From positions 2,046,001 through 2,110,000 of the forward strand of contig CM074817.1 of assembly GCA_037447605.1 (NCBI GenBank): DNA of 64,000 nt. The letters are read 5' to 3'. This document shows, piece by piece, positions 1 to 58,113 of the stretch. The notes below the pieces were generated by a model. It did not search any database, was not told the origin of the DNA, and worked only from the letters and a program-made list of their open reading frames with translations. Source of the DNA: Zygnema circumcarinatum SAG 698-1b (Eukaryota > Plantae > Zygnematophyceae). Numbering within the stretch: position 1 is the stretch's first letter; every line of letters starts with the position of its first letter. The translations under genes and the position numbers were made by a program.

Positions 1-75
1 TCTAGTGATGTATCGTCTACATGTAGGGCTTTGGAATCTGCTCGTTCAAGTAGGTAGTTTATAAGAAAGTGACAG

Positions 76-2298
76 GTGGCAGCTGTTGGGGGGATGCCGC
101 TATCCACAGGGCGGAACGAGTGACGGAAGTGATGGACCTATGGGGCTCCATGCGGGAAGAAGGCTGTGCCCCAAATCAGGGGACCTACCACCTTCTGCTC
201 TCTACCTTTGTAAAGGCGAAACGATGTGACTTAGCTCTCGAAGTGTACTATGAGCTTCTCACAAACAATTTAACACCTAGCACAGAAATCTTCAAGGGCC
301 TCATTTCCGTTGCCTGCAACTGCAACAGGTGGCCATTAGCGTTAGATTTCTATGGGGAAATGGTGGCGACGGGATTTATGCCCAGGAACGTTCTTGTGTA
401 CAATACATTAATTGCCGCGTTAGGACAGATCGGCAGGTGGGATACAGCTTCTCGGATTTTTGGCCATATGAGAGTAGCAGGAGTGGTAGCAGACCAGTTC
501 ACATGGAGTGGAATGCTTACTGCCTTTGCGAGGGCAGGAGAGTTTAAGAAGGCTATGGAGTTCCATGAAGAGATGATCAAGGGGGGGATGCGACCCAATG
601 TTCAAGTCTGCAATGCTTCTCTGCTCGCGTGTCAAGGGAGAGGAAAGTGGCAGGTGGCGCTGCAGCTGCTGTGGGAGATGGAGAGAGGAGGAGTTCGACC
701 GAATGTTGTGAGCTACAGTACAGTAATCAAAACATGTGAAGTTGCAGGTGGGTTGTTGGAGTTTTGTACTATGCAATCACTGGTGATTCCATGGCACATT
801 TCACTGCTTTAATATAAGGTTGAACTTTTCTCCGTTCCGTCAAAGGTTAACTCAATCTGTCTTCCTCCAGACACTGGAAACAGATCCGCTTACAAGTTTT
901 CCATCATCCTTACACTATGAAATCCATCGTGATCAAGCTGACTCTGATGTTGGAAGCTGGCCAAAAAAACATCCACTTCAGAATCTAACAATCTGAAAAC
1001 CCCGTTTGGAAATGCTTGGCATGCAGGCGTCCCAAAAGTGGCGATGAAGGTCTATGAGCGCATGCAGCGTGTGGGATGTCGCCCAAATGCCTTCACCTTT
1101 GGAGCCCTCATTGCAGCACACGGGCTTTCCAAGGATTGGAGAGCTGCAATAAGCCTCCTGCAGGTGAAATTGTCATCCTTTTTAGGATTTGAAGGTTTTA
1201 GAATTTAGGATTTTCATGTTGTTGGAGAGAGGATGGCATACCTATGACCTCTTACTTTTCAAAGCAAGGCCTTAATGTGTTTTGTATCGTCATGTTCTTT
1301 GCATGAAGTAGGGGGCAAGGGAGGGGCGATGGAGGGGTTATCTGCTAACGATAGCGGGAATGTTGAGAGTCATTGTTCTTGCCAGATTACTGTGTTCTGG
1401 TCGTTCTATCTCTATGTATTAACAGAATCCAATCTCTCCCTCTCCCTCCCATTCTTACACACAGGAAATGCGACTTATAGGACTTCAACCGAATGTATAT
1501 GTTTATAATGCACTATTGAAAATTCTCGGCGAGTGTAATCAGCGTAATAAGGCTGAGGAGACCTACGCCCAAATGGAGCGCTATGGAGTGAAGCCTGATG
1601 AATGTACGGAGGCTCTTGTAAGGCGGTACTCTCTTGGAATGGAGCTTGAAAAAGAGTCCGACGACGAGGAGAGTGGCAGTTGGAGTAGAAGCAGACGAGA
1701 GAGAGGGGGGGAGGGGGAGACAGAGAGATGGCAACAGCTCACAGAGGGAGGGGACTTGAGGCGAGAGGCCGCGTGGGAGGAGGATGTTGGGAGACTCTCA
1801 ACAGACAGTCGTGCAGAGTCGTGGGTGGAAGGTGGGAGCTTTGGAAGGAGAGACGAGGAATGGGGAGAAGGTAGGAGAGAGAAGAGCTTTTCTGAGGCGA
1901 CTGGAGATTGGTGGAGACAGGGAGACGTCGGTGAGAGAGATGGAGGGGGAGAGCGAGATAAAGGAGGAGAGTGGGACAGTAAAGAAGGTGGAAATATGGG
2001 GTTTTCTTCTCAGTATGAAGGGTTGGAGCAGGAGGGAGGACCTCCGGGAGCAAGGAGTGGCATGGCTGTGAGCAGTGAGAGAGGAAGAGTACAACAGAGG
2101 AGTAGGGAGGACAGTAACGGAGGCGGTAGTGGTCAGTCCTTGGAAGGAGGGAAGGGGGGAGCGGTTGTGGGAAGGAGAGGGAACAGAGAGAGGGAGTCGC
2201 GAATAGAGAGAGATTTGGAGCGATGGGTGCAGAGCTCAGGCGAGCGAAGGGACTCGTCAGAAGATGTCAGACGGTATTGGAGTAAGGGTCATGGCTAG
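76..2298 (+). CDS. Pentatricopeptide repeat (P-type PPR) protein, 5'-partial; exons ~76-747, 1027-1163, 1465-2298
   Basis: About 9 tandem ~35-aa PPR motifs (e.g. VYNTLIAALGQIGRWDTASRIFGHMRVAGVVAD, VYNALLKILGECNQRNKAEETYAQMERYGVKPD). GT-AG introns 748-1026 and 1164-1464 keep the frame. Ends in a long G/E/R-rich tail. Confidence 0.9.
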
Positions 2299-3598: not shown

Positions 3599-5265
3599 TC
3601 ACGTCTCTGTGTCCTCAGATTTCATCGTAAGAGCTCCACTTTCCGCCGCATTCTGTGGAGAAGGCCTGTAAACAGTCCCTCCAGGATTAAGGTTTCAGTC
3701 TATACTGCCTTCTTCTCTTCTCTCTCTTTCTCTCTTCTCTTCTCTCTTCTTCTTCTTCTCTTCTCTTTCTTCTTCTCTCTTCTCTTCTTCTCTTCTCTCT
3801 TCTCTCTTCTCTCTCTCTCTTCTCTTCTCTCTCTTCTTCCGCTCTTCTCTCTCGCTCTTCTTTTCTGGTTTCCCTCATCCTTTCAACCCTCGTAGTCCAC
3901 TCTCTTCCTCTCTCTCCTCGTTTCTCACAAATTTGTCCGCTCTATCCCTCAACGCGATTGAGCAAACCGGGGCTGACCTGCACAAAAGGGTGAGTTCAGG
4001 CTGCGCGAGGAGCAGCTCTGACAGGGGCCTCCTCTTCTCCATCTCCTCCGACCGATGTCTGCACCGACTCCCATAATTAGAGTCAGTGTAGACTGACTTC
4101 CAAGTTGCAGAAATGTAATGCTAAACGGAAAAAGTCGGTGCAAAACGCAAGAGCATTTGACTGCGGTGTAATAGCTAAATCGTCAGAATGAAGGCTTGTT
4201 CAAAGTTTCATCGAGAAACTGAAACTTTGAACAAGTTCCTGTACATGCGAGGCGTGAGGATCAAAAATTTTAAGAAGAAAGTTGCAGCACCATTCTTCCT
4301 CTACACTCGTTCATCGCTATAGGAGGGAGAGAAGGAGAAGGGAGGGGGGAGGGGGGAGGGGGGAGGAACATACCCAATACCCTCATCCACAGAGAGCAAT
4401 TTGTGGCCGATCTGTCCGTTGCCCCCCACATAGCTCACTACCAGCGCCCCCGCATCAGGGTGCGGCCACATGCGGGAGCTCGCAAAGCGGAGGAGAAAGG
4501 ACCCCACGGGAGAGTGGGTGCCCTGCAGTACACACAAGAAGAAGAAGAAGTAGAAGAAACTCTCTTCCATAAGAAGATACGTTGGCTTCTCGGCTCCATT
4601 TAGCAGAGTTTGAGACTCTGAGAGCTCGTGGATTCCATAGGTAAAGGTGAACGAGGTTTGCTACCCATATGACTCTTCATCGAGTGGCGAAAGACCTATT
4701 TCGAAACCCCGATTCTGCTACTGCATGTTGAAGGATTCTGCTAATTCTTTGTCTCTCTGAGCAGAAAGTTCTTCTTTGTCTCGAATTAATTGTGTAATTT
4801 ATTTTCGACTGTCTTCTACAGCTTTTGGACTTTTTTCTACAGCTTTAAATATTTTGTAAGTTGCATCACTTTAGAGATTCTATTCCTCCTAAAGCTTCAA
4901 ATCAATAGGGGGTTTGGGGTGTTGAAAAAGGAACGAGCTCTCACTCCTTGTGACTTGAGCATTGCCTCCGCCTCCTCTCTCGATATCATCCCCTCTATCC
5001 ACTTGGGCTCCTCGCTCTCCCACGCTGCTCTCAACTGCGGAACTGTGAGGGCCACCGCCACAGGGAACACCCACTGCCAGAGACGGTCGAACTGCTCCCG
5101 TGAGAGGGAGCCGCTGCAGCCCGCTATCGCACGGAGGAAGGCTTCATCCTGCAGGGAAATGAGCGTGAGTGGGAGAGGGAGAGGGAGAGGGAGAGGGAGA
5201 GGGAGAGGGAGAGAGGAGTTGGAGAGGGAGAGGGNNNNNNNNNNGGAGAGGGAGAGGGAGAGGGA

Positions 5266-16627: not shown

Positions 16628-19600
16628 CTAATATGGGCTTTCTGGATACTGCGCGAAACGCGCCATGGCCTTCTTCTGCAGCATGACTTTGTGGTCATCG
16701 CCCGGCAGAATTTTGAAGCGCGAATTGTCTTCCAGCTGCTGCATCCCAAGGCCCACTCTCTGCCCTAAACTCACCGCCTTCACTGGCTCCAGCATCCCCG
16801 AAGACTGCCGGCCCAACCCCTGCAAACCACTAGGAAAATTCCATCAGCTTAAATAGAGCTAAATAGAGCTCACTCTGGTTATGGACCCTAGAGTCTCCGG
16901 GGGAAAAGCCAACAAAAAATGTGAACTTCATTCATGTACAACGACTTCTCCCACAACCCACTTTCCCTCCCTCCCTCCCTACCTCCCTTCCTCCTTCCCT
17001 TACCTGTCCTTCCTGCCATCCCATATTCCGCAGCATTTTGTTTCCCACATTCTGCTCACTCAACGTTTGCTGCGGAGTGAATGCTTCAAACCCTTGTCCT
17101 CCTCCTGAACCCTCTCCCACGCCTGAACCACCCGTGTCTCCCGAGGCTTCCCTGAACCCTCTCCCTCTGCCCGCAGGCTTTCTGCGGAGTCCGGAGGGGA
17201 AGGGCACATCCCCTGTTCCCGAAACTCCTGCCCCTCTCCCTGCCACGCCGGGAGGAAAAGGCATGTCTCCTGTACAAGGGAGAGAGGAAGAGAGGAAGAG
17301 AGAACGGAGGTGTGTGAGAGAAAGCAATGTGAGAGATGTTCGCACGAGTGAGAGAGTCATTATGTGTGGAACATTTATTTTTGGGTGAACGAGGCCATCA
17401 CCTCGCCCACTTGCTTCCTCATGAAAGCTTCTCCTCTCTTGGGGCTCCCGTGCCCCTCCTCCCCCCCCTCTCTCTCCCTCTGCAGGGACATTCCTCTCCG
17501 TCCCTTGGAGGGAGGGAGGAGTTTCCGAAAACTTCCGTTTTCCAGTGACAGGCGGTGCTTGGTTGTTGTATGCCCCAAGAGCCGAAGCATTAGTCTTGAA
17601 TGGCTGAGGCCCACCGGACAAGGAAACAGCCCTCCCTGCTCCCTCTCCCCCTCCCTCAGGCCCTCCAACTTGCCTCCTTGAAGGTACAGAAGGCACCCAA
17701 AAAGCACCTCCTGCACTACCACTTCCCCCGGACTCTCCTCCCTTTACAGCTGCCGCTCCTCGGCCTCGTCCTCTTCCTTCGCCTGCCACTCCTATCACAC
17801 CCACTCCTCCCTCTCGTCCTCTCCCTCCCTCCCCACCGCTACTCCCAATTCCTCTACCCCTCCCTCCCTGCTGCCATCCAGGAGGGGGCACAGCATCACT
17901 CCAAGCTTTCCCAGAAACCTCTCCTCCTGTAGAGGGCGCTGCTCTAAACCCTACAGAGCCGGATTGGCTACTCAATGAGGAGAAATATCCACTTCCTGAA
18001 GGCTGCCCTGAAACCTTTTTTGCTGCTGAGCCCGCCTCATGCTGCCTCTGCTTCCATACATTCAGCTGTTCCTGTACTTTCTTTTTGTTTGCTTCCTTCT
18101 CCCTCTCCCTCTCCTTCTCTTTCTCTTTCTCCGCCCTGCTTGCTACAGCTGCTGCTGCAGCGACTGCCTCTGCCAAAGTCATCTTCTTTTCAGAAGTGGG
18201 CAGCTGCTCTTGTTGCGATGCTGTGGGACCCACAGCTACTTCCGAATCTTTCAGGTTTTCAGAAGCTTGATTTTCTGCACCTTGTGAACCATTCCCAGCT
18301 TCATCTCTATTTCCTTCTGCCGCTTCAGCGTTTCCAGAATGTTCTAGAAGTTGGGCAGCATCAGCAGTGCTTCCATTTTCCGGATTCTTGCGTTCGACAG
18401 CGAGTTCCCGTCCCTCTGGTTTGGAGCAAGGAACGTATTGGTTGGTTGCTGCATCTAAAGCATACCACTGTCCAGAGTTTCCATCATAATACAGTCCTGC
18501 AGAAATAAAGCAGGAATACAGCGATTATAAGTCACGCATTGAAGTGTGAGAGATATCTAACTCAACCTCCAACGCCCTGAATGCAGGAATTACAGTCTTT
18601 TCACACCATACAGTAGAACCACTAAGACCCTGAGCAATAGATGAAATAGTACGATTTACTGTAGCCTGCAATCATCTGACTTTTTTGACTTTCAGATCAG
18701 CATTTGCGACCAGTTTCGGCTGAGTGACAACTAGTCGCTACACACCTGAAGCTTTCATACAAATGCAGTCACATTTTCTACACATATCTGAAGCTTTGGA
18801 AGGGTTTCAAACATCAAAGTTTTAAAGATGACGTTTTTGAGCTTTGTCCAGCCAGTACCTTGGTGCCCATCATAATACATTCCTGTAGAAGCCTGATAGT
18901 AATACCCTGAAGCTTCATCCCATACAAATCCCTCTCCAGTTCCACCTCCTCCTGCTGTTTCAGGACCTTTCTTTTCTCTGCTTATGTCAGAATCCCGCAC
19001 ACTCCTCCGCGACGAATCCCTCCGATCTGAGTGTCTGGGGGACCTCCTACTCTCTCTATTTCCACGCTTACTCTCCCCTCTCTCATCTATCTCATTTTCC
19101 ATCTCATTCATAGAGTCTCGTGAATATCTTTCACGGTGATGCCTTGGTTGGCTTTCCCAATGTGACGATTGTCTGTCATCCCTCCATCTCCTCTCCCTCT
19201 CGTGGTCTCTCCCATGTTGGCGATGACCTCCCGCCTCCCGCTCCCACTCCCTCTCCCTCTCCCTCTCCCTCTCCCTCTCCCTCTCCCTCTCGTCCCGTTC
19301 CGATCGTCGCTCCCCCCGTTCCGATCTTCGCTCCCCCCGTTCCATGCTGCCATCCCTAGCTTGAAAAGAACTAGTTTCTCCATGTCCAGTATGAACACTC
19401 CCGTCGTTCCTAACAAGATCACCATTCCCATGTGTGGGCTCCCTTTCCAGTTCTACTTCAGTTTCCTGTTTTTTCCCTTCAGAAATATCTCCTGGAATCT
19501 CTCCCTGTTCTCCGCAATACTCTTTTGGGAACCATCCCACCTCCTCATACTGCAATGCAAAAGGAGCATCTGAGTAGTGAGCATCTTCCTAAAGCACCCA

Positions 19601-28313: not shown

Positions 28314-31300
28314 CTATCCCGAAACAGCCTCTCCTTTCTCGTTTTCTGTCACATTGGTCTCCGTTTCAGATCCTGTCCGCTTCCCATACAAAGATTTGTA
28401 CACCGGCAAAGTCCTCAATGTGAGGACGATGTTCATCCCCACTCCCACAAAGCACACAACCATCATGATAAAAAAGGTCAACCTAAAACAATGCGCGCCA
28501 TGGCACGTTTCCCTCCCTCCAATCATCCCAATTTCTGAACCCACCTCATCAAAAAACCCCAACGACCCCAAGTTCCCATTTGAAGAACCAAGAGCCCCAG
28601 AGCTTCCCTGAGATAGGAACACTCCCTTTAATCCGTTGACTATGGCATTTCCGGTGTCGATTCCCCCCTCTTTAGCCGCCTCTAACTCGTAAAGATACGA
28701 AGCAATAAGACTTGAACAAACAAAGGACCCAACTGGGGTCGCAATAGTGAGAGTGTTGTACACCATCCCAAAATGTTTCAAGCCGAAAAGCTCACTCGCC
28801 ATGGCGGGCATTATCGCCCAGTGAGCTCCATAACCGAACCCAACTATGAGCGAACCTCCATAGAGAGAGTTGGGAGAGGCTATGGCGAAGAGGAGGTGCC
28901 CAGCCGCCATAGCCATTTGGGCCACTCCGAGAACGATAGCTCGAGGGAGAGCATAGTTTCTGTGCACCCCCCCATAAAGTTTAGGGTCAGAAAGGGAAGG
29001 GTTTGAAAAGGAAGCAGGTTCCCTACTCGAGCTTTTTTGGTCTCGGATACTTTTTTGGATTTTTGAGGAGTTCAAAATTTCGTCTCTTGAAACAGAGATT
29101 TAATTTAAATTTAAATTCAATTTAAGAGCTTAGCATTTAGAGTCTCTATTCTGAAAGATATGCGCCATGTATCTAGGGTTCAGAAAGAGCGCTGAAGTAT
29201 GAATAAAAGACTTCAGTGCTTTACCACTGAGAAGAGAGCAGAATGAGAAGGAGCATTCGTTAGTGAAAGCGATTAACTTACTTCACAAGATGCTCTGAAA
29301 CAAACCCCGTCAATAGTCGACCATAGAAATTCGATATGGAGACCATTGCTACAAAAGTTCGCACATTAGAGTATCCTTGAGCCGCACCCATCTGCGCGAG
29401 ATTGTTAATCACCACTAACCCTGACCCACATCCGCAAAGAACGGACCAAAAAAGAAGCCAAAAGTCTGCCTTCACTAAAGCCTGCACGAGAGTGAAATTC
29501 TCTCCCCGGCGAGGTCCCTTCCTTCTTCTACTAAGTCTTACTGCTCCTTGACCAACCGCCATAAGAATTACAGAACGTCTCCTGTTATATGGGCTTCCAA
29601 GAGCACTTTCTAAAATTGGGGTTCTACTTAATTGGGCCTCTCGTTTCTCCATTTCCCCTCCTTCTTTCTCATCCGCACTGAATAGATCATCGCTGAAGTA
29701 TCCGCTCGGAATTTTAGTTAATTTGGGAGACTCTTTGAAAATGGGCTCTTCACAATTGGGAAGCTGATGGTGGTTACAAGATTGCCGTCTTTCAAATATT
29801 GTTGGTAGAGCATTGGATGAGGGGTGCAAAGGGGGTCGAAGGTTCGAGAATGTCTCGGCGGAGGAATGTGAATTGATGGAATTAGCAGTCGTAGCAGGGG
29901 CCCTCTTCGCAATATATTGATCATGGGGATATTCTGAATCAGACCCACAATGGGTTTTTTCGGCTGTAGAAAATATAGAAGCTGGTAAACCGGTCTTTAC
30001 CTCGATTTTCTCCTTTTCTTCGAAGATTTGTCCTTGTGTTTCCTCGAACTTGTCCGCCGTTTCGTGCCCAAGAAGCAGCGGCGTTTCCATGTCAATAGTT
30101 AAATCCGTTGACCTCTCGTTCCCATGTTCCGAAGTTGCATGGGAGAGGGGGTTCCATTTGACGGCCGAAATCATTAACTTGAGGGGAACGAGAAGGGGAA
30201 GTATCAAAATGGAAATCGTGCTGCTGCATATTACGACGCTTACCTGTTGTTGAAACTCAATACGAAAAAAAGTAATAGTAATAAGTAATAGTAACAAGTA
30301 AACAAAGTAAGTAAATTTTGTTTGTACAAAACAAACAAATTAAACTAAATTCATTTCAATATCTACTCGATCAAAAGCCACACATGCAGAAAGACACAAC
30401 ACAGAAGACAAGGGAGGGGGGGGGAACTTGAAGACGAATGTTTTTCAGAGAATTTTGCGTCTCCAGAAACAGAAGCAATACTCTCCAGATAGCTGTAGTG
30501 TGACCAAAGTGGTAAGGGCATTTCTTACAAACCCATACAACGAAGAATTTCAAACTTAAAAAAAAAACAAAAAAAAAATGTACCTTGTGAGGTACTTCGA
30601 ACTGATCTTGCGCGAGCATGGCAACCAAAATGTAAGCGGCCAATCCTGAGAGCAGAAGAATGATGATGTTGAAATTGGTCAACTCCTCCTCCTCACTTTC
30701 TGTCTCTTCCACTGACGGGTCAACCGGCCTGTTACACACATCCAAGAAAACGAAGTGCCCTTCCCCCCAAAATCAAATCAGTTACTTGAAAAAAAAAAAA
30801 AAAACCCCGGTCATAAAATCTTTCCAAGAAACTGAAATTAGTCAAGCTTGGAGATCATTAGAATTTCAACCCAGCACTTTTAGAAACTGCTCCTGCTGCT
30901 TTCGTCACCTCTTTCTACCGTTCCCTCCCCAAGAAACAAGAGTTGAATCTTCCTACTAACCCCCCACCTCCGCCTTCAAAGCTAGCGCTAACCCTCNNNN
31001 NNNNNNCCCCCTCCCCTCCCCCTCCCCCTCCCCCTCCCGCTCCCTCTCCCTCTCCCTCTCCCTCTCTCCGCACCTTATCATGAACATGGTCCCCACGGCG
31101 ACGACGGCGGGCAGCAGTGCGAGCATGAGCACGAACTTCCGTTGGTCGTAACTGAGAAAGGCCGCATAGAACTGCATGAAGAGTCCCCCCGAGAGCCCCA
31201 CGAGCCCCTTGAGCGTGCCCACCACGGCCCCTCTCACACGTGGGAAACTGCGCACGCTCGTCACCAGCACCGCCGTGTTGAAGTACGCCATGCCCTGTGA

Positions 31301-31911
31301 CCCCACCACAAGCAGAGCGCACATCTGCGGACAATATATCGCCCCCCCACATACCCCCAGCGAGAGAGAGAGAGAGGGAGAGGGAGAGGGAGAGGGAGAG
31401 GGAGAGAGAGAGGGGGGGAGGGAGGGAGAGAGAGAGAGTTGTGTCAGTGCTTGGAATTCAGAGACATCAAAGAAAGAGGGCAAGAAGGAAGGATGAAGAA
31501 CAAGAAACGGCCAAAGATATAACTCCTTTCACAGTTTTCTCCCTTTTCTGTCCACTTTGCCGCAGTTTCCATTCCTGTCTACATTGGCCTCTCCAACTCC
31601 GTCTCCTTAATCCCCCACACCTTTTATCTCCCTTTTCCCGCCAGGCCTCATGCCCCCTCTCTCGACTTACCCCCTCCTCCAGTTAACCNNNNNNNNNNCA
31701 CGCTCTCGCCGAGGTCCTTGGCGACGGCGAGTGCGCCCACTTGGACCTGCGAATAAGCGAGGGCGCCCTTCAGCACGGGGGAGTAGATCGCGAATGTGGA
31801 AGAGCCGCCGGCGGAAGCCATCCACATGCAGCCGACCAGGCTCAGCCATCGCCGGGTGCCGGGGGGAAGGCGGAGGCGGGGCTTTCGGGATGGGGAGTGG
31901 GTGGGGGTCAT
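28314..31911 (-). CDS. Nodulin-like / NFD4-like MFS transporter (two N gaps inside; the one at 31689 hides coding sequence)
   Basis: RWLSLVGCMWMAS...AKDLG, YFNTAVLVTSVRSFPRVRGAVVGTLKGLVGLSG, ENFTLVQALVKADFWLLF, SISNFYGRL, GFGYGAHWAIMPAMASELFGLKHFG, CHGAHCFRLTF. Confidence 0.92.
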
Positions 31912-47324: not shown

Positions 47325-49263
47325 TCAGCTGCTGAAGCTCTCCACGGTGAAGGTGGCGGCGCCGTCCAAGTTCTGATAGCCGAACTGGCTGTAGCTCGAG
47401 CCGCTCGGCAGGGGGAGGGCCCACGAGGGCAGCGTGTAGAGGTCGCCTCCCAGAGGCTGCAGGTTGTAGTACAAGACGGGGCGGAAATTCTGCACGCGAA
47501 TTGTGAGGGCTCTGAGGGTGGCGGAGCCGCTGTTGAGCATCGTCACTTTGTAGGAGAACACTTGGCCGGCAGAGGTGGACCAGCTGCCCTCCAGGGCCTG
47601 CGTGATCACTATAGGGGAGGAGGCTGCAAGGAGAATGTGGGGGTGGGGGGGGGGTAAGGTGGGGGGTGATGAGTTGGGTGGTGGGGCAAGAAGATGGGGA
47701 GGGAGAGAGAGTGTGTCTGCGTTGTGGTGGGGCAGGGGGGGAGATAAAGTGGAGATGAGGAGAGAGGAAGAAGCAGGATAGAGGGAGACAGAGAAAAGGG
47801 GAGGTGGAAATGGTAGATGTGTGGGCGCGGAAGGGGAGGGTCAAGGGAGGATGGGAGGAGGAGAGGATGACAGGAAGATGGCAGACGATCGACCTTAGCC
47901 CTTACATCTAGTACGGTGAGGAAAGTGCATGACTTACAAGTTAGAGAGTTCAAAAAAACTATATCACAGGCAAATGCAAAGTGCGAGTAATCATCAATGC
48001 GTCGAATGTCAACAGAAAGGCAGACCGGATTACAAATACTCACTTGTCACGGGAGGAGGAGGACGAGAAGTAATAGGAGGCGGCTTTGCTGATGTGGGTG
48101 GGGGGCGGCGGGAGATAAACGGAGGAGGTGGCGAAGCGTATTTTGGGGAGGGGGGAGGTGGCCCTCTCATAGTGAGCTTGGGAGGAGGAGGAGAGGGTGG
48201 AGGCGAGGACACGGAGACCCTCGGGGCGGGGGGGGAGGGGGAGGGAGGGGGAGGGAGAGGGGGAGAGTTAAGGCGAGGGGAAGGCGGCAGAGGAGGGGGG
48301 GGAGAGGAAGAAGTGAAAGTGGGAGAGGGAGACGGAGGCGAACGGGGAGGGGAGGATGGAGAGGAAGTGAAAGTGGGAGAGGGAGACGGAGGCGAACGGG
48401 GAGGGGAGGATGGAGAGGAAGTGAAAGTGGGAGCGGGAGGCGAAGGGAAAGCTGGAGGGGGACCGGTTGAGGGAGGGGGAGGGGGAAGGGGAGGCGGAGA
48501 AGGGCGGAGGGGAGGTGGCGACTGTCTGGGAGGGGGAGGAGAAGGGGGAGGGGGGTAAGCTGGAGGAGTAGATACTGCGAGAGGGGGAGGTGGGCTTTCA
48601 TTTCCGGACGAAAACTGTGCTCCGCAGTTAAAGGTCGTTCCTGCATTGCTCGGCTGTATCAAGTTCGGGCATGTGATTACTTCTCCTGAAAAATGGGCTC
48701 CACAACAGAGAAAATTGCACATTAAAATTAGCTTCTGCATTTGGACTATTGATGCAAAGTAACAACCATATTCACACTACTCATGTCTATAATCCAAAAA
48801 TGCTTTGAATGTGTACCCAACCTTCCTACCCTTTTGTATTCTTTCATCACCTTTTTTGAGTTCTTCGCCTTTCAAAAGTAATTTGCTGACATGGACGACA
48901 AGTGTAGAGAAGCTCACCTGTGGCGTCAGATTTAAGGCGGAGGGTGAAAGGGAAGGTCAGCCCAGAGCCGGATTCTATTACGAAAGCTCCCCCCCAATCC
49001 CTCCTAAAGGGCAAAAATATATTTGAATTTCCCTGTTCGCCAGCCAACACAGAAAGTACAAGGTTTTCTATGTCACGTAACATCTTTGTACCATTCATTT
49101 TAAGAGACAAAGTTTGCAGGAAGAGAGAGGGTTATGGCAAAGAGAGGGAAGAGAGGGAAGTGAGGAAGGGGGGCGGAGTAGGGAAATAGATCAAGTGAAG
49201 AGTGGAGGACAGCAGGGTGAGACACAGGGAGAAAGTGAGATGACGTGAGGGGAGGGAGCGAGT

Positions 49264-49294
<31 letters not shown>

Positions 49295-50591
49295 GTGGGT
49301 GGGGAGAGGGCGCGAGAGAGACACACCTGCTTGAGAGAGACTTCGCTAATAGCACCGGGGCCGTTACCTCCTCCGGGAATCACAGAATACCACCATGGGC
49401 TTGAGCCGGGCCGGATCTTCACAAAAATTGAGGGGTCGAAACTGCAGGGCCACCTGAGAAAGAAGAGAGGAGAAAACAGTACATTTTAGAACCACATTAC
49501 GTCCGTGTTCTCCTTATCGTCCCTTTCTTTCTCGACTTTTAACTCGACCCAAATCTTCCCTCTTTTCCAACACTTTCCCCACTTCCCCCGGTCGCCTACC
49601 CTGCTGCTGGTTTGTCAACCCTCGTCCCTCTCCCTAGTTCCCGTTACCTCCAAACCTTCCCTTGACCCCCTTACCTCCCTCCTCCTCTCTTTCACTTCCC
49701 CCTTTTCGATTTTTTTAATCTACCCCTCTGCCTTCGTCCCTCCCATTACCTACCACCTCCACCTCCTCTCTGCTCCTCTCCCTCCTCCCCACCCTCCCAC
49801 TGCTCCCTCCCACCCCGCCCTCTCCCTTCACTCCCTCCCTCCCACCCTCCTCTCCCTCCCCGCCCTCTCCCTCTCTTCTCCCTCCCCCCCCCCTCGTCCC
49901 CGCGCGCACCGCTCATAGAGGATGTCGAGGACGCCCACTTTCCGGCGCAGGTCGTCCTCGCGGCCGGGCAGGGCGAGCGCGCCGAACGCGGCGCCGCTGA
50001 GGTCGAAGTGCGTCCTCCCGCCGCCGCACATGTCCCCGCCCGGACACTCGTCCGTTATGGGCACCACCAGCGTGCGGTTCGCGCACAGCGCCTGGTTCAC
50101 GCACCGAATCTGCACACCACACATGCGCCCTCGTTCAGAACGAAAGAACCACGTGTGCGCCCACCCACCCTGTAGCAGCCCCTCCCCTGTGCGCCCACCC
50201 ACCCTGTAGCANNNNNNNNNNGACGACAAGTGTAGAGAAGCTCACCTGTGGCGTCAGATTTAAGGCGGAGGGTGAAAGGGAAGGTCAGCCCAGAGCCGGA
50301 TTCTATTACGAAAGCTCCCCCCCAATCCCTCCTAAAGGGCAAAAATATATTTGAATTTCCCTGTTCGCCAGCCAACACAGAAAGTACAAGGTTTTCTATG
50401 TCACGTAACATCTTTGTACCATTCATTTTAAGAGACAAAGTTTGCAGGAAGAGAGAGGGTTATGGCAAAGAGAGGGAAGAGAGGGAAGTGAGGAAGGGGG
50501 GCGGAGTAGGGAAATAGATCAAGTGAAGAGTGGAGGACAGCAGGGTGAGACACAGGGAGAAAGTGAGATGACGTGAGGGGAGGGAGCGAGT

Positions 50592-50622
<31 letters not shown>

Positions 50623-52012
50623 GTGGGTGGGGAGAGGGCGCGAGAGAGACACACCTGCTTGAGAGAGACTTCGCTAATAGCACCGGGGCCGTTACCTCCT
50701 CCGGGAATCACAGAATACCACCATGGGCTTGAGCCGGGCCGGATCTTCACAAAAATTGAGGGGTCGAAACTGCAGGGCCACCTGAGAAAGAAGAGAGGAG
50801 AAAACAGTACATTTTAGAACCACATTACGTCCGTGTTCTCCTTATCGTCCCTTTCTTTCTCGACTTTTAACTCGACCCAAATCTTCCCTCTTTTCCAACA
50901 CTTTCCCCACTTCCCCCGGTCGCCTACCCTGCTGCTGGTTTGTCAACCCTCGTCCCTCTCCCTAGTTCCCGTTACCTCCAAACCTTCCCTTGACCCCCTT
51001 ACCTCCCTCCTCCTCTCTTTCACTTCCCCCTTTTCGATTTTTTTAATCTACCCCTCTGCCTTCGTCCCTCCCATTACCTACCACCTCCACCTCCTCTCTG
51101 CTCCTCTCCCTCCTCCCCACCCTCCCACTGCTCCCTCCCACCCCGCCCTCTCCCTTCACTCCCTCCCTCCCACCCTCCTCTCCCTCCCCGCCCTCTCCCT
51201 CTCTTCTCCCTCCCCCCCCCCTCGTCCCCGCGCGCACCGCTCATAGAGGATGTCGAGGACGCCCACTTTCCGGCGCAGGTCGTCCTCGCGGCCGGGCAGG
51301 GCGAGCGCGCCGAACGCGGCGCCGCTGAGGTCGAAGTGCGTCCTCCCGCCGCCGCACATGTCCCCGCCCGGACACTCGTCCGTTATGGGCACCACCAGCG
51401 TGCGGTTCGCGCACAGCGCCTGGTTCACGCACCGAATCTGCACACCACACATGCGCCCTCGTTCAGAACGAAAGAACCACGTGTGCGCCCACCCACCCTG
51501 TAGCAGCCCCTCCCCTGTGCGCCCACCCACCCTGTAGCANNNNNNNNNNTCCCCTGTGCGCCCACCCACCCTGTAGCAGCCCCCCCCCTGTGCGCCCACC
51601 CACCCTATAGCAGCCCCTCCCCTGTGCGCCCACCCACCCTGTAGCACGCCCCGCAGCCCGCCCCCGCGCGGTACAGCGGCGCGCTGCCCGCCGCGACGAG
51701 CTTTCCGTACGGCGTCTGCTCCAGCGCGCCGAACCCGCACGCGCCGCCTGCGCCCCCGCCCGCTCGCCCTCTCTCTCTCTGTCAGACGCGGCTCCCCTCC
51801 CATTCCCATTGTTTCCCTTTGCGGGGCAGAGCATGGCGGGGCCATGGCGGGGCGGGGCGGAGCTCACCGTCGGTGCCGGGCCCGTTGTCGTCGCCGTACC
51901 ACGTGGCCTTGGCCGCGCCCTGCAGCCCCCCGTACTCCGCCCGCCCGCCGCCAACCGCCGCCGCCATGAGCCAGAGCGCGACCACCGCCGCCCTCGTCAT
52001 CGCCATCGCCAT
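47325..52012 (-). CDS. Expansin A: signal peptide + beta-expansin-like domains 1 and 2 + Ser/Pro-rich stalk + CBM49-like module; exons 52012-51868, 51747-51638, 51437-51238, 50781-50655 (duplicate copies of these last two at 50109-49910 and 49453-49327), 49032-48918, 48685-48044, 47627-47325
   Basis: [53 protein letters not shown], SPn repeats, ITQALEGSW...YKVTMLNSG...YTLPSW. Confidence 0.85.
48894..51539. repeat. 1328-bp-period direct duplication (48894-50211 = 50222-51539), each copy followed by 10 N
   Basis: All ORFs in the track recur with an offset of 1328; both copies end at the same base before an N gap. Confidence 0.9.
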
Positions 52013-53257
52013 GGACCGCCTGCGCCGCCTCTTCTCCCTCCCTCTCCCTCCCTCTCCCTCCCTCTCCCTCTCTCTCGCCCTCTCCCGCCTCCTCTCCCTC
52101 CCCCTCCCTTTATCCCCCTCCCTCCCTTCTTCCTCTCTCTCCCCGCCGAGCGCGAGGCGGCCGCCGGCGGCTGAAGGCGGACGGCCGCTCGGAGCCGAAA
52201 TCGGCCGCCGGCCGCCGCTTTGTGCCGAGATTGTCACGTGGCGCCTTCCCATTGGCGCAGAGCAGTCCGGAACCCCACGTGGCGAGTCGTCAATAACTTT
52301 CCGGCAGACCGTACGGACTGTCAACGTGGTGCCGTAAAAAGGTTTCAGTGAGGGTCCGCAAACAGACAAAAATGCGACCTCGTATAATGTCGCATTGAAT
52401 TGTCATGTACGAACATGACAGACTGACGGATTCACGACCTGTTGTTCTACAAAGGGATCTGTACGGTCGGATTGAAGTTGAATTATGCTGACCTTGTCGT
52501 TTAGCATCCCGACATCCTTGCCGGATCGTCATACAGTACGTACAGTTTCCGTGGTGCGTCTAGTGACTCGGACGGACACATGTCTAATGTTGCCCAATGG
52601 TCGTGTCCACAGATGCCCAAGAAGTTTTGAAAGGCTTCATGGAACAACAAACAACAACAACGACAACAACAACAACATTGTTTGCAAGGCCAGGGTTGCG
52701 TGAGGGACAACCGCGAGCGCACCTCTCTTTGGAAGTAGACATGAAGTGGAATAGGGCCCTCTTGGGCACAATATTAAAAATTGTCGTTGTTCGGTTTTAG
52801 GGTTTTCATGGTTCCAACTCATCCAAGAAGCCAGTGATTGCAAAGGTAAAGCACCATTTCTCTTCTCGCTTGCATTGAAATGTTTCGAATATAACAAGAT
52901 GTTTGCATGATGCAAACAAATGTACAGAGAGGGCCTACGAACTCAGACATACGTATTAAATACAATATTCACAACCTTCTACAGGACAATGGAAGGACCT
53001 GAGCTCCGTCCTAACAAGTACCCACCACTACAGTCTATGACCTCGCCCCACATTGAAGGCACAACAAGTGCGCAGGCGATGTCTCTACAATTACATGCAC
53101 AAGCACAAGTGCTGCCCCACTTGCATGCGCTTGTCGAAGGGCCCTCTCCGTGACAATGTCGAGTATTTAACCTTTTCAAACTCAACACAGAGCCCGCCCC
53201 ATCCTCCTGCACATGCCATCATGTGCTAGAGGATGGGCCTCTCTTCCAGGACCTCCC

Positions 53258-55363
53258 TCATGCATAGCTTTCCACGGTGAATGTGGCCATTCCTCCCAAG
53301 TTCTGATACCCGAACGAGGTGTAGCTTGCCCCGCTTTCAAGTGGGAAGGCCCACGAAGGCAGAGTGTAGCGGTCGTTCCCAAGCGCCTCGAGATTGTAGT
53401 AGAAGAGGGGGTGGAAGCCCTGTGCGCGAATTTTGAGAGCCGTGAGAGAGGTGCCGCCGCTGTTGAGAATGGTTACCTTGTAGGCGTACACGGTGCCGCC
53501 GGAACCGGGCCAGCTGGACTCCAGGGCCTGGGTGATGACGGCAGGGGAGGCTGCAAAGGGAAGGGGGGGGAGGGGGGGAGTAAGGTGTGGTGGGTTTAGG
53601 GGAGCGACGAGGCGGTGGAGGGGAATGTGCGAAGGAACCGAAGGAGGAGGAGAAGAGGAAGGGGGAGGGGAATGGAAAGGGAGGAGAGAGAGTGAGAGGG
53701 TGAGAGGGTACGAGCGAGGGAGCGAAAGGGGAGGTGAGGTGGAGGGGAGTGCGAGCAGAGAGGAAGAAGGAGAGGGGGGCGAAGTGGGAGCCGAGAGAGA
53801 GAAGAAGAGAACTTTCAAAGAAGAAGGAGAAGGGTTGGGAGGAACGGGAGGAGTGGAAGAAGACAATGGACCAAAAGAATTTCACTTGAGCATGAGAGTA
53901 GAAGCTTTACATTCACAATTGGCATATTCACCAGAGCAAAATTGAAACTGCACACCGCAACGATGAAAAGGCCCAACAACCGTAGGAGAAGGGGAGGAGA
54001 GGGATGAAGGGGCTCACTCTTTAGGGGTTGAGGGGGAGGTGAAGGAGCCTTCGGAGGAGGTGCCTTTGCCTTTGGTGGTGGTTTTCGAGGGGCCGTTGAA
54101 GGGGGCGGTTTCTTAGAGGTTGGAGGTGGCTTATAGGCTGTGCCCTTAGAAGGCGGTGGAGGCTTCAAAATTTTTGAAGTTGAAGGTTTTGTCGGTTTGG
54201 GAGGAGGAGGTTTTGTGGTTTTGGGTTTTGGAGGTGTTCGCGGAGTTGGTTTGGGAGCGGACGGAGGTTTTGGTTTGTTTTTTGGAGGTGGTGGTCGTTT
54301 ATGTTGAGTAGATGGGGAAGGCGGGGGAGGAGGACGACGAGGAGGAGGAGGAGAAGGACGAGGACGAGGAGGAGGAGAACGACGAGGACCAGGAGGAGGA
54401 GAAGGACGAGGACGAGGAGGAGGAGAAGGAGGAGGACGAGGAGGAGGAGGAGAAGGACGAGGACGAGGAGGAGGAGAACGACGAGGACCAGGAGGAGGAG
54501 AAGGACGAGGACGAGGAGGAGGAGAAGGAGGAGGACGAGGAGGAGGAGGAGAAGGACGAGGACTAGGAGGAGGAGAAGGAGGAGGACGAGGAGGAGGAGA
54601 AGGACGACGACGAGGAGGAGAAGGAGGAGGACGAGGTCGAGGGGGGGGAGGAGGAGGCGTTTGAGGTTTTATGGGGGGCTTTGAATGTACGGTTACATCG
54701 GATTTTCCGGGAGGAGGAGGAGCCCTTGGAGGAGGGCTTTTGTTTCCAGACGAGAATTGGGCTCCACATTGAAAGGTCTTCCCACCATCATCTTCTCCTA
54801 CCCTTTTTGGGCACGTAATCACCTCACCTGAGGGCGAACAAACATGCATATATGTGGGGTTTGATGGAGTCCGAGTCCGATTATTGGTGAAAAAGGGATT
54901 AACAAGTTGACTCTAAGTTTCTTTCAAGATAACAGGCCACACAGAGACTAGAATTTTCTACCCTTTTTTGAATGAAACCTCATACATCCTGTCGGCTCGT
55001 CTTACAGAGTCAGTTTCCTAATCCGTGCTATACATGAGTATTGTTGGATAGTATTCCAACTCCATTTTAGAATGAGCCTTTTCAAAGGGAGAGTTGACAG
55101 CCTCAGCCGGGAGAGAAGCGCACCTGTGGCGTCCGCTGTGAGCTGCAGAGTGAACGGAAACTTGAGCTCCCTCCCGGAGTTTATAACAAAAGCGCCTCCC
55201 CAGTCCCTTCTTAGAGGAATAAAGCTCGTGGAGTCATCCTGAAAGCACGAATCGCAAACGAATATGATATTTGGTTTGATGCAATGAAATTGACATTCGA
55301 AGAACTCAAATCGTGTAATGGTCCAAGTTGATGGATGGAAAGGGAGACGCGTGAGAGGGAGTT

Positions 55364-55415
<52 letters not shown>

Positions 55416-57360
55416 AAGAGTGGAAGAGTCGTGAAGGAGTAGAACCAAAAGGGGAGGGTGAGAGGGAGAGGGGGAGTGCGGGAGGGAGTGAGTGCCACAG
55501 AGAGAGAGAGGGGAGGGATTGCGCCGACCTCCTTGATGGCCACTCCGCTTACAGCTCCCGCGCCATTCCCGCCCCATGGTATGGGGGAGAACCACCACTT
55601 CCCAGAGCCGCTCCGGAGCTTCACAAAGAGGGAATCGCCGTACTGGCATGGCCACCTGAGTCAGCCCCGCCTTGGGTCAGCACACACTCTGAACGGCTCC
55701 CACGAAGACGGGAGCCGCCCGACGACAGCATGGCTCTGAAACACTCCTGAGAGAATCGCTAGAAATCCACAGCTTGGCGGAGATGTTCTCTGCTCCCCTT
55801 CCTTCCTTTCTCGCTCCCCGCTCGCTCACTCCTCCCTCCCGCCCACGGCCCTCTCCATCCCCGCCCTATCTCTACTCTCCCTGCCGATTGCACCCCTCTC
55901 CCTCCCCACCCTCTCCCTTCTCCCTCCCGCCGCGCCCCTCTCCCTCTCCGCCCACTCTCTTCTCTCCCTCCCGCCTGCGCCGCCCTCCCTCTCCCTTCTC
56001 TCCCTCTCTTCTCCCTCTCCCGCCCTCTCCCCTCCCCCCTCGTCCCCGCGCGCACCGCTCATAGAGGATGTCGAGGACGCCCACTTTCCGGCGCAGGTCG
56101 TCCTCGCGGCCGGGCAGGGCGAGCGCGCCGAACGCGGCGCCGCTGAGGTCGAAGTGCGTCCTCCCGCCGCCGCACATGTCCCCGCCCGGACACTCGTCCG
56201 TTATGGGCACCACCAGCGTGCGGTTCGCGCACAGCGCCTGGTTCACGCACCGAATCTGCACACCACACATGCGCCCTCGTTCAGAACGAAAGAACCACGT
56301 GTGCGCCCACCCACCCTGTAGCAGCCCCCTCCCCCCCCCTGTGCGCCCACCCACCCTGTAGCAGCCCCCCCCCCCTGTGCGCCCACCCACCCTATAGCAC
56401 GCCCCCCCCCTCCCATGTGCGCCCACCCACCCTGTAGCAGCCCCTCCCCTGTGCGCCCACCCACCCTGTAGCAGCCCCTCCCCTGTGCGCCCACCCACCC
56501 TGTAGCAGCCCCCCCCCTGTGCGCCCACCCACCCTGTAGCAGCCCCTCCCCTGTGTGCGCCCACCCACCCTGTAGCAGCCCCTCCCCTGTGCGCCCACCC
56601 ACCCTGTAGCACGCCCCGCAGCCCGCCCCCTGTGCGCCCACCCACCCTATAGCAGCCCCTCCCCTGTGCGCCCACCCACCCTGTAGCACGCCCCCCCCCC
56701 CCCTGTGCGCCCACCCACCCTATAGCAGCCCCTCCCCTGTGCGCCCACCCACCCTGTAGCACGCCCCGCAGCCCGCCCCCCTGTGCGCCCACCCACCCTA
56801 TAGCAGCCCCTCCCCTGTGCGCCCACCCACCCTGTAGCACGCCCCGCAGCCCGCCCCCCTGTGCGCCCACCCACCCACCCTGTAGCAGCCCCCCCCCTGT
56901 GTGCGCCCACCCACCCTGTAGCAGCCCCTCCCCTGTGCGCCCACCCACCCTATAGCAGCCCCTCCCCTGTGCGCCCACCCACCCTGTAGTAGCACGCCCC
57001 GCAGCCCGCCCCCGCGCGGTACAGCGGCGCGCTGCCCGCCGCGACGAGCTTTCCGTACGGCGTCTGCTCCAGCGCGCCGAACCCGCACGCGCCGCCTGCG
57101 CCCCCGCCCGCTCGCCCTCTCTCTCTCTGTCAGACGCGGCTCCCCTCCCATTCCCATTGTTTCCCTTTGCGGGGCAGAGCATGGCGGGGCCATGGCGGGG
57201 CGGGGCGGAGCTCACCGTCGGTGCCGGGCCCGTTGTCGTCGCCGTACCACGTGGCCTTGGCCGCGCCCTGCAGCCCCCCGTACTCCGCCCGCCCGCCGCC
57301 AACCGCCGCCGCCATGAGCCAGAGCGCGACCACCGCCGCCCTCGTCATCGCCATCGCCAT
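53258..57360 (-). CDS. Expansin B: same architecture as A with an Arg/Lys/Pro-rich stalk; exons 57360-57216, 57095-56983, 56255-56056, 55655-55529, 55238-55124, 54827-54018, 53550-53258
   Basis: Same seven-exon structure and intron phases as A. HFD motif; domain 2 WPCQYGDSLFVKLRSGSGKWWFSPIPWGGNG...RRDWGGAF; C-terminal VITQALESSW...YAYKVTILNSG...YTLPSWAFPLESG. Confidence 0.87.
56296..57000. repeat. ~34-bp minisatellite (~19 units) in intron 2 of expansin B; also in expansin A at 51482-51660 and 50154-50211, cut by N gaps
   Basis: Unit gcagcccctcccctgtgcgcccacccaccctgta with length variants. Confidence 0.9.
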
Positions 57361-58113
57361 GGACCGCCTGCGCCGCCTCCTCTCCCTCCCTCTCCCTCCT
57401 TCTCCCTCCCTCTCCGTCTCTCTCGTTATCTCCCTATTATTCTCCCTCCCGTTTATCCCCCTCCCTCCATTCCACCTCTCCCTCCCTTCCTTCATCGCTC
57501 TCCTCTCCCCGCCGAGCGCGAGGCGGCCGCCGGCGGCTGAAGGCGGCGCGTCCCCGGCGGCCGTTCGGAACCGAAATCGGCCGCCGGCCGCCGCTAATGC
57601 GCCGTGTGTTCCACGTGGCGCCTGGCCATTTGCGATAGATCCAAATGTATGACACTTGGTATAATAAGATTGGTTGGACGTCGGACAGTACGAATTCAAC
57701 GCTGGTGCCGTACAGGTAAACAGGTTTCAGCCTTTTGTGCGAGAAAGGACAAAGAACGGCCCCGACATTTCCACTGTCACCCTCGTCTGGTACAAAAATG
57801 TACGGTTTCATATTGTAGGGCACTGTACGGTGTTTCGTCTGGTGTGTCCATTTGCTGGCCTCCTCAAATAGGGGATTTGACCTAAAATAGGTGGGCTCCC
57901 CCCTAAATTGGTTTTGAAAACCCCGTAAATAAGCATGCACGGACGATAGTTTTTTACGAATTTGTACGGATGGCCCTCTTTTTAGCGGGCCGGCGGGCGT
58001 GGTTCGTTGTCGTTTTGAGTAGCTCGAAGCAGTTCTAAAGCCGTCGGCCTGTTGAGCCTCGAAGCAGCAACAAGTCAACAACAACAAAGGAGTAGGGACC
58101 AATGTCAGTGCCT

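Follow-up and report, generated by a model that had tools for sequence, protein, structure and literature searches.

Two tandem genes for putative secreted expansin–Pro-rich linker–CBM49 proteins in the streptophyte alga Zygnema circumcarinatum

We analyzed a window of 64,000 nucleotides from the assembly of Zygnema circumcarinatum SAG 698-1b (GCA_037447605.1, contig CM074817.1, positions 2,046,001 to 2,110,000 of the forward strand), and all coordinates given here count from the first letter of that window. Its minus strand carries two neighboring genes of seven exons each, called gene A and gene B here. All of their introns are of the GT-AG type, and both spliced frames are open. Gene B (53258–57360, minus strand) has its ATG at 57360, and its exons (57360–57216, 57095–56983, 56255–56056, 55655–55529, 55238–55124, 54827–54018 and 53550–53258) add up to 1803 nucleotides and 600 amino acids. 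Gene A (47325–52012, minus strand) is made of the exons 52012–51868, 51747–51638, 50109–49910, 49453–49327, 49032–48918, 48685–48044 and 47623–47325, with a total of 1638 nucleotides and 545 amino acids; its stop codon ends at 47325. The two proteins are 63% identical overall, and a tblastn search of the window with the gene B protein matched only the two genes plus a redundant copy of 1318 bp. Both proteins have the same domain order: a signal-peptide-like N-terminus, a domain 1 of the β-expansin (EXPB) type, an expansin domain 2, a Pro-rich linker and a C-terminal CBM49. An initial annotation, made from the sequence of the window, had proposed two seven-exon genes with these outer coordinates and with the C-terminal module on a phase-1 exon of its own, and the open spliced models agree with it on each of these points. 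The acceptor of the last exon of gene A is the one position that had to be corrected, from 47627 to 47623.

Genes A and B are likely to be real, transcribed tandem paralogues for secreted modular wall proteins, in which a C-terminal CBM49 would anchor an EXPB-type expansin head, carried on a spacer resembling hydroxyproline-rich glycoproteins (HRGPs), for local loosening of the wall. What the analysis shows directly is how the genes are built, which domains they encode, which fold the module has, and that the exon of the module is spliced to that of the linker.

The expansin part was identified by two routes. The Pfam scan was made exon by exon. Exon 3 of gene B (56056–56255, minus strand) holds the core of domain 1, including the TDECP and HFDLSG motifs, and scores 36.2 bits against DPBB_1 (cut-off 28.8). 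It is identical to exon 3 of gene A (50109–49910). In the Protein Data Bank, its sequence is matched best by maize EXPB1 (2HCZ) and Phl p 1 (1N10), and the relatives found for this exon are seed-plant EXPB3, EXPB16 and EXPB17 with 45–56% identity. Domain 1 resembles the expansins of Streptophyta. Domain 2, of the CBM63 type, is encoded by exons 4 and 5 (55124–55655, minus strand, in gene B; 49453–49327 and 49032–48918 in gene A). A local EXPB profile was built from 51 relatives of exon 3 and searched against the spliced proteins. It aligns without a break across domains 1 and 2, at positions 43–246 (B) and 43–252 (A) of 269, with scores of 182 and 188 bits, respectively. Pfam Expansin_C scored 16.7 bits on exon 5 alone, below its cut-off of 24.6, because domain 2 is split over exons 4 and 5 and the start of exon 6.

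The EXPB signatures ATWYG and GGACG and the HFD signature are visible in the profile alignment, and the four motifs reported initially (GGACG, GCGACY, TDECP and HFD) are present in the translations of both genes. A long insertion between TDECP and HFD is regarded as typical of EXPA. This α-insertion is absent here, and the spacing from TDECPGG to HFD is EXPB-like. By these sequence features, domain 1 is assigned to the GH45-like double-psi β-barrel type with HFD and, within the superfamily, to the putative EXPB type. The N-terminus reads MAMAMTR, followed by a hydrophobic core of 13 residues and then GGGRA, with a Kyte–Doolittle peak of 2.5. Land-plant EXPBs such as maize EXPB1 and Phl p 1 share both domains, the TWYG, GGACG and HFDLSG motifs and the spacing without the α-insertion, and they are about 50% identical over exon 3; they begin with a signal peptide, as the proteins of genes A and B may do. 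They end after domain 2, at approximately 260–280 amino acids, whereas the proteins of genes A and B do not have this two-domain ending and continue for another 285–340 residues of linker and CBM49.

The boundary between domain 2 and the linker lies within exon 6. Roughly 30 residues at the start of this exon, a conserved Cys pair among them, still belong to domain 2, so that the linker has no exon of its own. In both genes, exon 6 is symmetric (1-1), and the start of exon 7 is in phase 1. These phases are compatible with exon shuffling but do not prove it. The Cys pair is located at residues 238–253 in A and 239–254 in B, in a short extension (GEVITCP...) beyond the part that is aligned by the EXPB profile. 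This extension may form a small disulfide-closed cap ahead of the linker.

The linker was measured from the residues QFSSGN to the module. In gene B (54019–54741, minus strand), it comprises 244 residues with 52% Pro, 11% Arg and 10% Lys, and it contains 13 Ser-Pro motifs with three or more prolines (SP3+) and a 33-residue repeat in 3.4 copies. In gene A (48045–48599, minus strand), it is a Pro/Ser-rich stretch of 189 residues (48% Pro, 21% Ser) with eight SP3+ motifs and an 18-residue repeat in 2.5 copies. Motifs with four or more prolines number five in A and three in B, and the linkers have the repeated Ser-Pro3–5 of classical extensins. The Tyr cross-linking motifs YXY and VYK are found in neither linker, and each linker has only one or two Tyr residues. 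The linkers are best described, from their composition, as putative HRGP-like rods with extensin-type glycomotifs, and not as classical cross-linking extensins. The initial annotation had described an 'extensin-like' stalk of 200–270 amino acids. The Pro-rich spacer with its SPn motifs is there, with measured lengths of 189 (A) and 244 (B) residues, and the label is loose because the Tyr cross-linking motifs are absent and the linker of gene B is strongly basic.

A Pro-rich rod of 189–244 residues with a carbohydrate-binding domain at each end, domain 2 at one and CBM49 at the other, would also suit a different role. The proteins could be mainly structural chimeric HRGPs, with the expansin head and the CBM49 serving as polysaccharide-binding ends that cross-link or scaffold the wall with little or no loosening. 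Green algae have many long chimeric extensins that are absent from land plants (PMC10762512), which fits such a role. We consider it unlikely, as domain 1 retains TWYG, GGACG, HFD and the EXPB spacing, and the linkers are without Tyr cross-linking motifs. An anchored, wall-loosening expansin remains our preferred description.

The module at the C-terminus had been called a CBM49 initially, and Pfam places it in this family well above the cut-off in both genes (PF09478, cut-off 23.4 bits). The module of gene B (53261–53548, minus strand) has 96 residues, is encoded by the terminal phase-1 exon and scores 49.8 bits over profile positions 2–77 of 80; that of gene A (47328–47621, minus strand) has 98 residues and scores 48.7 bits over positions 1–77. 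The module of gene B was folded with AlphaFold (AF2) from an alignment of the two modules with 16 modules of database relatives. The resulting model is an eight-strand β-sandwich with a mean predicted local distance difference test score of 96.6. The best fold matches in reviewed UniProt are the CBM49 of Arabidopsis endoglucanases 19, 6 and 5 and of rice endoglucanase 13. Against these models of class C GH9 (GH9C) enzymes, the template modeling (TM) score is 0.85–0.90 and the root-mean-square deviation is 1.5–1.9 Å, at 26–30% sequence identity. They are followed by Dictyostelium stalk proteins A and B (StaA/StaB) and spore germination protein 270-11. The solved structures closest to the model are cellulose-/chitin-binding domains of family 2, with TM scores of 0.62–0.67 for those of C. 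fimi (1EXG/6QFS). A shape search of the Atlas with the module ranked a streptophyte GH9+CBM49 cluster first. A feature search of the Atlas returned mostly bacterial CBM2-like clusters; it served as a lead only and was superseded by the fold searches. By sequence and by its modeled fold, the C-terminal module is a CBM49. Its conserved aromatic residues are W13, the Trp of LPSW and Y81.

The long, exposed linkers raise the question of whether the module stays on the protein. Pro-rich linkers of this kind are common cleavage sites, the linker of gene B is very rich in Arg and Lys, and the CBM49 of GH9C enzymes can reportedly be cleaved off. If linker and module were removed after secretion, the mature, active form would be a conventional expansin of two domains, with the module needed for targeting or latency only. 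We regard this as quite improbable. Despite their diverged 3′ halves, both paralogues keep an open-frame Pfam CBM49 (67% identical between A and B), which fits selection on the module, although it is compatible with cleavage too. In the preferred reading, the module remains in place as the anchor.

Transcript evidence was obtained from public sequencing runs. For the 3′ half of gene B, the search listed eleven runs, all from one organism; eight of them contain its sequence words, and the contigs of four of these were placed on 53200–57420. The junction from linker to CBM49, 54018→53550, which the initial annotation had placed exactly and proposed for a check against RNA, appears in the contigs of all four runs (CT..AC as read on the plus strand, corresponding to GT..AG in the orientation of the gene). 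All six junctions of gene B were found in spliced contigs, each at its modeled position. The junctions of exons 5–6 and 4–5 were seen in four of the four runs, those of exons 3–4 and 2–3 in three runs each, and that of exons 1–2 in two. A single contig of run X4 spans exons 6-5-4-3, and contigs of approximately 1 kb hold the 3′ untranslated region, exon 7 and the final 298 nucleotides of exon 6. For gene A, there is a contig of run X1 in which exon 3 is followed by 16 bases from the start of exon 4 of this gene (loose end 56053). Exons make up 0.56 of the region 47325–49453 of gene A; 0.38–0.77 of its words occur in the presumed RNA runs and 0.94–0.98 in the DNA runs, whose contigs total approximately 80–250 Mb.

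Unspliced contigs of low depth cover the region of intron 6 (53564–54047) in run X3, while the other three runs have such contigs for parts of it only. Either intron retention, pre-mRNA or DNA that was present in the libraries would account for them. Directly upstream of both ATGs are purine-rich (GGGAGA)n tracts (52020–52140 and 57380–57500), where they are presumably 5′ leaders, and also in intron 3. Introns 4 and 6 of both genes contain CT-rich tracts and microsatellites. Owing to such tracts, spurious read joints occur; the joints 56022<->57111 and 53698<->55499 were rejected as spurious matches of GA-rich low-complexity contigs.

The assembly of gene A is interrupted by two N gaps, at 51540–51549 and 50212–50221, both within intron sequence, and neither touches the coding sequence of the seven-exon model. 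The first gap is inside a 34-nucleotide minisatellite of intron 2. The second is just past a copy of exon 5, within intron 5 sequence. Between the gaps lies a block (50222–51539) in which all 1318 of 1318 bases are identical to 48894–50211. It contains the end of intron 2, exons 3–5 and the first 24 nucleotides of intron 5, ending exactly at the gap. Counted as real, the block would repeat exons 3–5, add 442 coding nucleotides, break the frame and bring in early stops. Its complete identity to the other copy, the gaps on both sides and the broken frame speak for redundancy. The arrangement fits a short redundant contig that was placed in a break caused by the minisatellite, and we read the block as an assembly redundancy that is not part of gene A. 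The length of gene A intron 2 as assembled includes the gaps and the block and may differ from the real length.

The same block could be read as a genuine tandem duplication of exons 3–5. The assembly as written does contain the duplication, and the resulting ten-exon gene A would have a frameshifted mRNA, leaving only gene B functional. This is extremely improbable: the two copies do not differ at a single base, the extra copy is bounded exactly by N gaps, one of which lies in the minisatellite, and the 3′ exons of gene A are found in RNA runs at about the exon fraction. We therefore retain two intact paralogues.

The minisatellite is best preserved in gene B, where 18.9 copies of the 34-nucleotide unit fill intron 2 (56300–57000, minus strand); the counterpart in gene A (51482–51652) is the one broken by the gap 51540–51549. 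The unit derives from the boundary of exon 2 and intron 2. The donor CAG|GTGGGT recurs in many of the units, and the final 22 nucleotides of exon 2 recur in some. Intron 2 of gene B thus contains approximately 19 decoy donors, and the RNA contigs use the first donor only.

The two paralogues are a mosaic with a sharp boundary. They are 100% identical in exons 1, 2 and 3 and in intron 1, except for an additional TAC in exon 2 of B, as compared over 51638–52012 and 49910–50109 in A and 56983–57360 and 56056–56255 in B. The first 300 nucleotides upstream of the two genes are about 90% identical. Identity is lost approximately 20 nucleotides into intron 3, and exons 4, 5 and 7 are only 71–76% identical. 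The pattern suggests recent gene conversion or unequal crossing-over limited to the half that encodes domain 1. The extra TAC codon of gene B lies at 56986–56988 in the genome (CYYRIR), and the RNA contigs of exons 2–3 in three runs are without it (CYRIR). These contigs may stem from gene A, or the TAC may be a difference of the assembly or of the strain.

From this architecture, a mode of action can be proposed. EXPB proteins act on the junctions between matrix and cellulose, and Pro/Hyp spacers are rod-like. The hydrophobic N-terminus would direct secretion. The spacer would form a stiff Pro/Hyp rod, possibly glycosylated, and the CBM49 may anchor the protein on crystalline cellulose, by analogy with tomato SlCel9C1 and the Dictyostelium proteins. 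The expansin head would then work within reach of the spacer, and loosening might be concentrated or retained on the surfaces of microfibrils, with the protein itself kept in the wall. PMC12821622 cites the binding of CBM49 to crystalline cellulose (Urbanowicz 2007).

Several points weigh against an anchored, wall-loosening expansin encoded by two expressed genes. The identity of domain 2 relies on the local EXPB profile, and in the alignment, the Trp of the 'WN' found in most relatives of the module is a Tyr here. The repetitive middle of gene B exon 6 (54316–54660) is in no RNA contig, and depth is greater on its 3′ side, five- to sevenfold in run X1. Because no contig crosses this region, a single mRNA of gene B from ATG to stop rests on the uninterrupted genomic open reading frame and not on a spanning read. 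For gene A, the support for transcription is indirect, from the share of words and the contig of exons 3 and 4. Secretion, glycosylation of the linker, cellulose tethering and wall loosening are plausible, predicted properties.

An exhaustive phmmer search with the module of gene B against 1.84 billion cluster representatives gave 53 matches at E ≤ 0.001, none of them above 43% identity, and neither the gene B protein nor close kin was found among these representatives. Likewise, a collection of 15 billion proteins yielded no close relative of the expansin domain or of the module. The Pfam scan took in 40 of the 53 matches; the remaining 13 are all longer than 1800 amino acids. An expansin-type domain was seen in only one of the 40 scanned proteins, P0037 (for the later batch, the 25 commonest of 77 families were listed). 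About half of the matches in that later batch are Fn3 repeat proteins. The closest matches with a single module, which come from metatranscriptomes and one Logan run, are GH5 cellulases and unnamed proteins, amoebozoan (Clastostelium) modules match at 29–34% identity, and no land-plant GH9C module was seen among the scanned matches. The modules of P0009 (locus L001), P0016, P0052 and P0027 are the closest relatives, with 33–40% identity and a shared FGYQN.GG..F ending; in these proteins, which also come from metatranscriptomes and one Logan run, the module is carried on a Thr/Pro or Ser linker behind a GH5 cellulase or an unknown domain.

A search from the expansin side with exon 3 (candidates of 262–833 amino acids) found ordinary EXPBs only, none with a CBM49, and a search of AlphaFold clusters with the module gave no match named expansin. 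In the literature on expansins, CBM49, streptophyte algae, Dictyostelium and chimeric extensins, we found no description of an expansin joined to a CBM49. A survey of expansin fusions lists only CBM1, CBM2, CBM32 and GH5 partners (Chase et al., 10.1101/637728), and the sole expansin in a table of Dictyostelium marker genes, expl7, is annotated with DPBB_1 only. The initial annotation had known of no described plant family with this architecture, and this holds for the papers that we found, with one distant protein of domain 1 plus CBM49 among the scanned matches. It had also named three results that would speak against its proposal, namely a missing CBM49, transcripts that end before the last exon and an architecture already common and characterised; none of these was observed.

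The protein P0037 (346 amino acids, JGI 3300030840, from a metatranscriptome) is like genes A and B in having an expansin-type domain 1 (EXPB1_D1, 92 bits), a Ser/Thr linker and a C-terminal CBM49. It differs in that it has no domain 2, its Ser/Thr linker has a poly-Asn run, and its domain 1 was missed by the local EXPB profile; it is uncharacterised. The composition of its linker is presumably dictyostelid-like. Class C GH9 endoglucanases of plants (tomato SlCel9C1, Arabidopsis GH9C1-3 and rice endoglucanase 13) also carry a C-terminal CBM49 after a linker, but the partner there is a GH9 hydrolase and not an expansin, and the module sequences are only distantly related to those of genes A and B, as given above. 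By sequence, the module is nearer (up to 43%) to GH5-linked or unknown metatranscriptome proteins than to GH9C.

Fusions of an expansin with an additional cellulose-binding module, often via a linker, are known from microbes and nematodes: swollenin (CBM1-expansin), bacterial expansins with CBM2, GH5 or CBM32, and nematode proteins with CBM2 and domain 1. These use other CBM families and another domain order; in swollenin, the CBM1 is N-terminal and precedes the expansin, whereas genes A and B have a C-terminal CBM49. The organisms that make them attack foreign walls, while the EXPB-type proteins of genes A and B would presumably act on the wall of the alga itself. The nearest animal analogue is a nematode cluster from the Atlas shape search that combines DPBB_1 with a CBM2-like fold. 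Among streptophyte algae, the expansin MdEXP2 of Micrasterias denticulata likewise continues far past domain 2 at its C-terminus, but the additional part contains a second DPBB domain and not a CBM49 (PMC3191482). MdEXP2 is localized to the wall, and its overexpression changes cell shape; the Micrasterias expansins have no HFD motif and are grouped with EXPA (PMC3191482). The EXPB type has been reported to appear only in land plants (PMC11547041). An EXPB-type domain 1 in an alga, if true, bears on when EXPB arose.

Plants loosen their walls without enzymes mainly by means of expansins, and it is still debated how these proteins find the rare cellulose sites on which they act. A natural expansin of the plant lineage with a predicted second anchor for crystalline cellulose on a long spacer makes it possible to compare the protein with and without the module. 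The principle of an expansin–CBM fusion is known; what is new here is that the module is a CBM49 and that the fusion occurs in the plant lineage, as a tandem pair. It enlarges the known set of CBM49 partners, which comprised GH9 and GH5 hydrolases and the matrix proteins of slime moulds, and it is a further indication that the wall proteins of streptophyte algae are assembled from modules shuffled onto Pro-rich rods. More tentatively, the two genes may belong to a lineage-specific modular-expansin toolkit of a streptophyte alga, in which an EXPB-type expansin was shuffled with a CBM49 nearer to protist than to GH9C modules; such an independent, swollenin-like invention for the own wall is a doubtful but possible interpretation.

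The window contains further N gaps at 5235–5244, 30997–31006 and 31689–31698. Other genes in it are one for a pentatricopeptide repeat protein at 54–809 (plus strand), which is cut by the start of the window and gave a single weak match that was uninformative as to lineage, an open reading frame with an OCRE domain at 18758–19588 (minus strand), and exons of an NFD4-like transporter of the major facilitator superfamily at 28317–30339 (minus strand).

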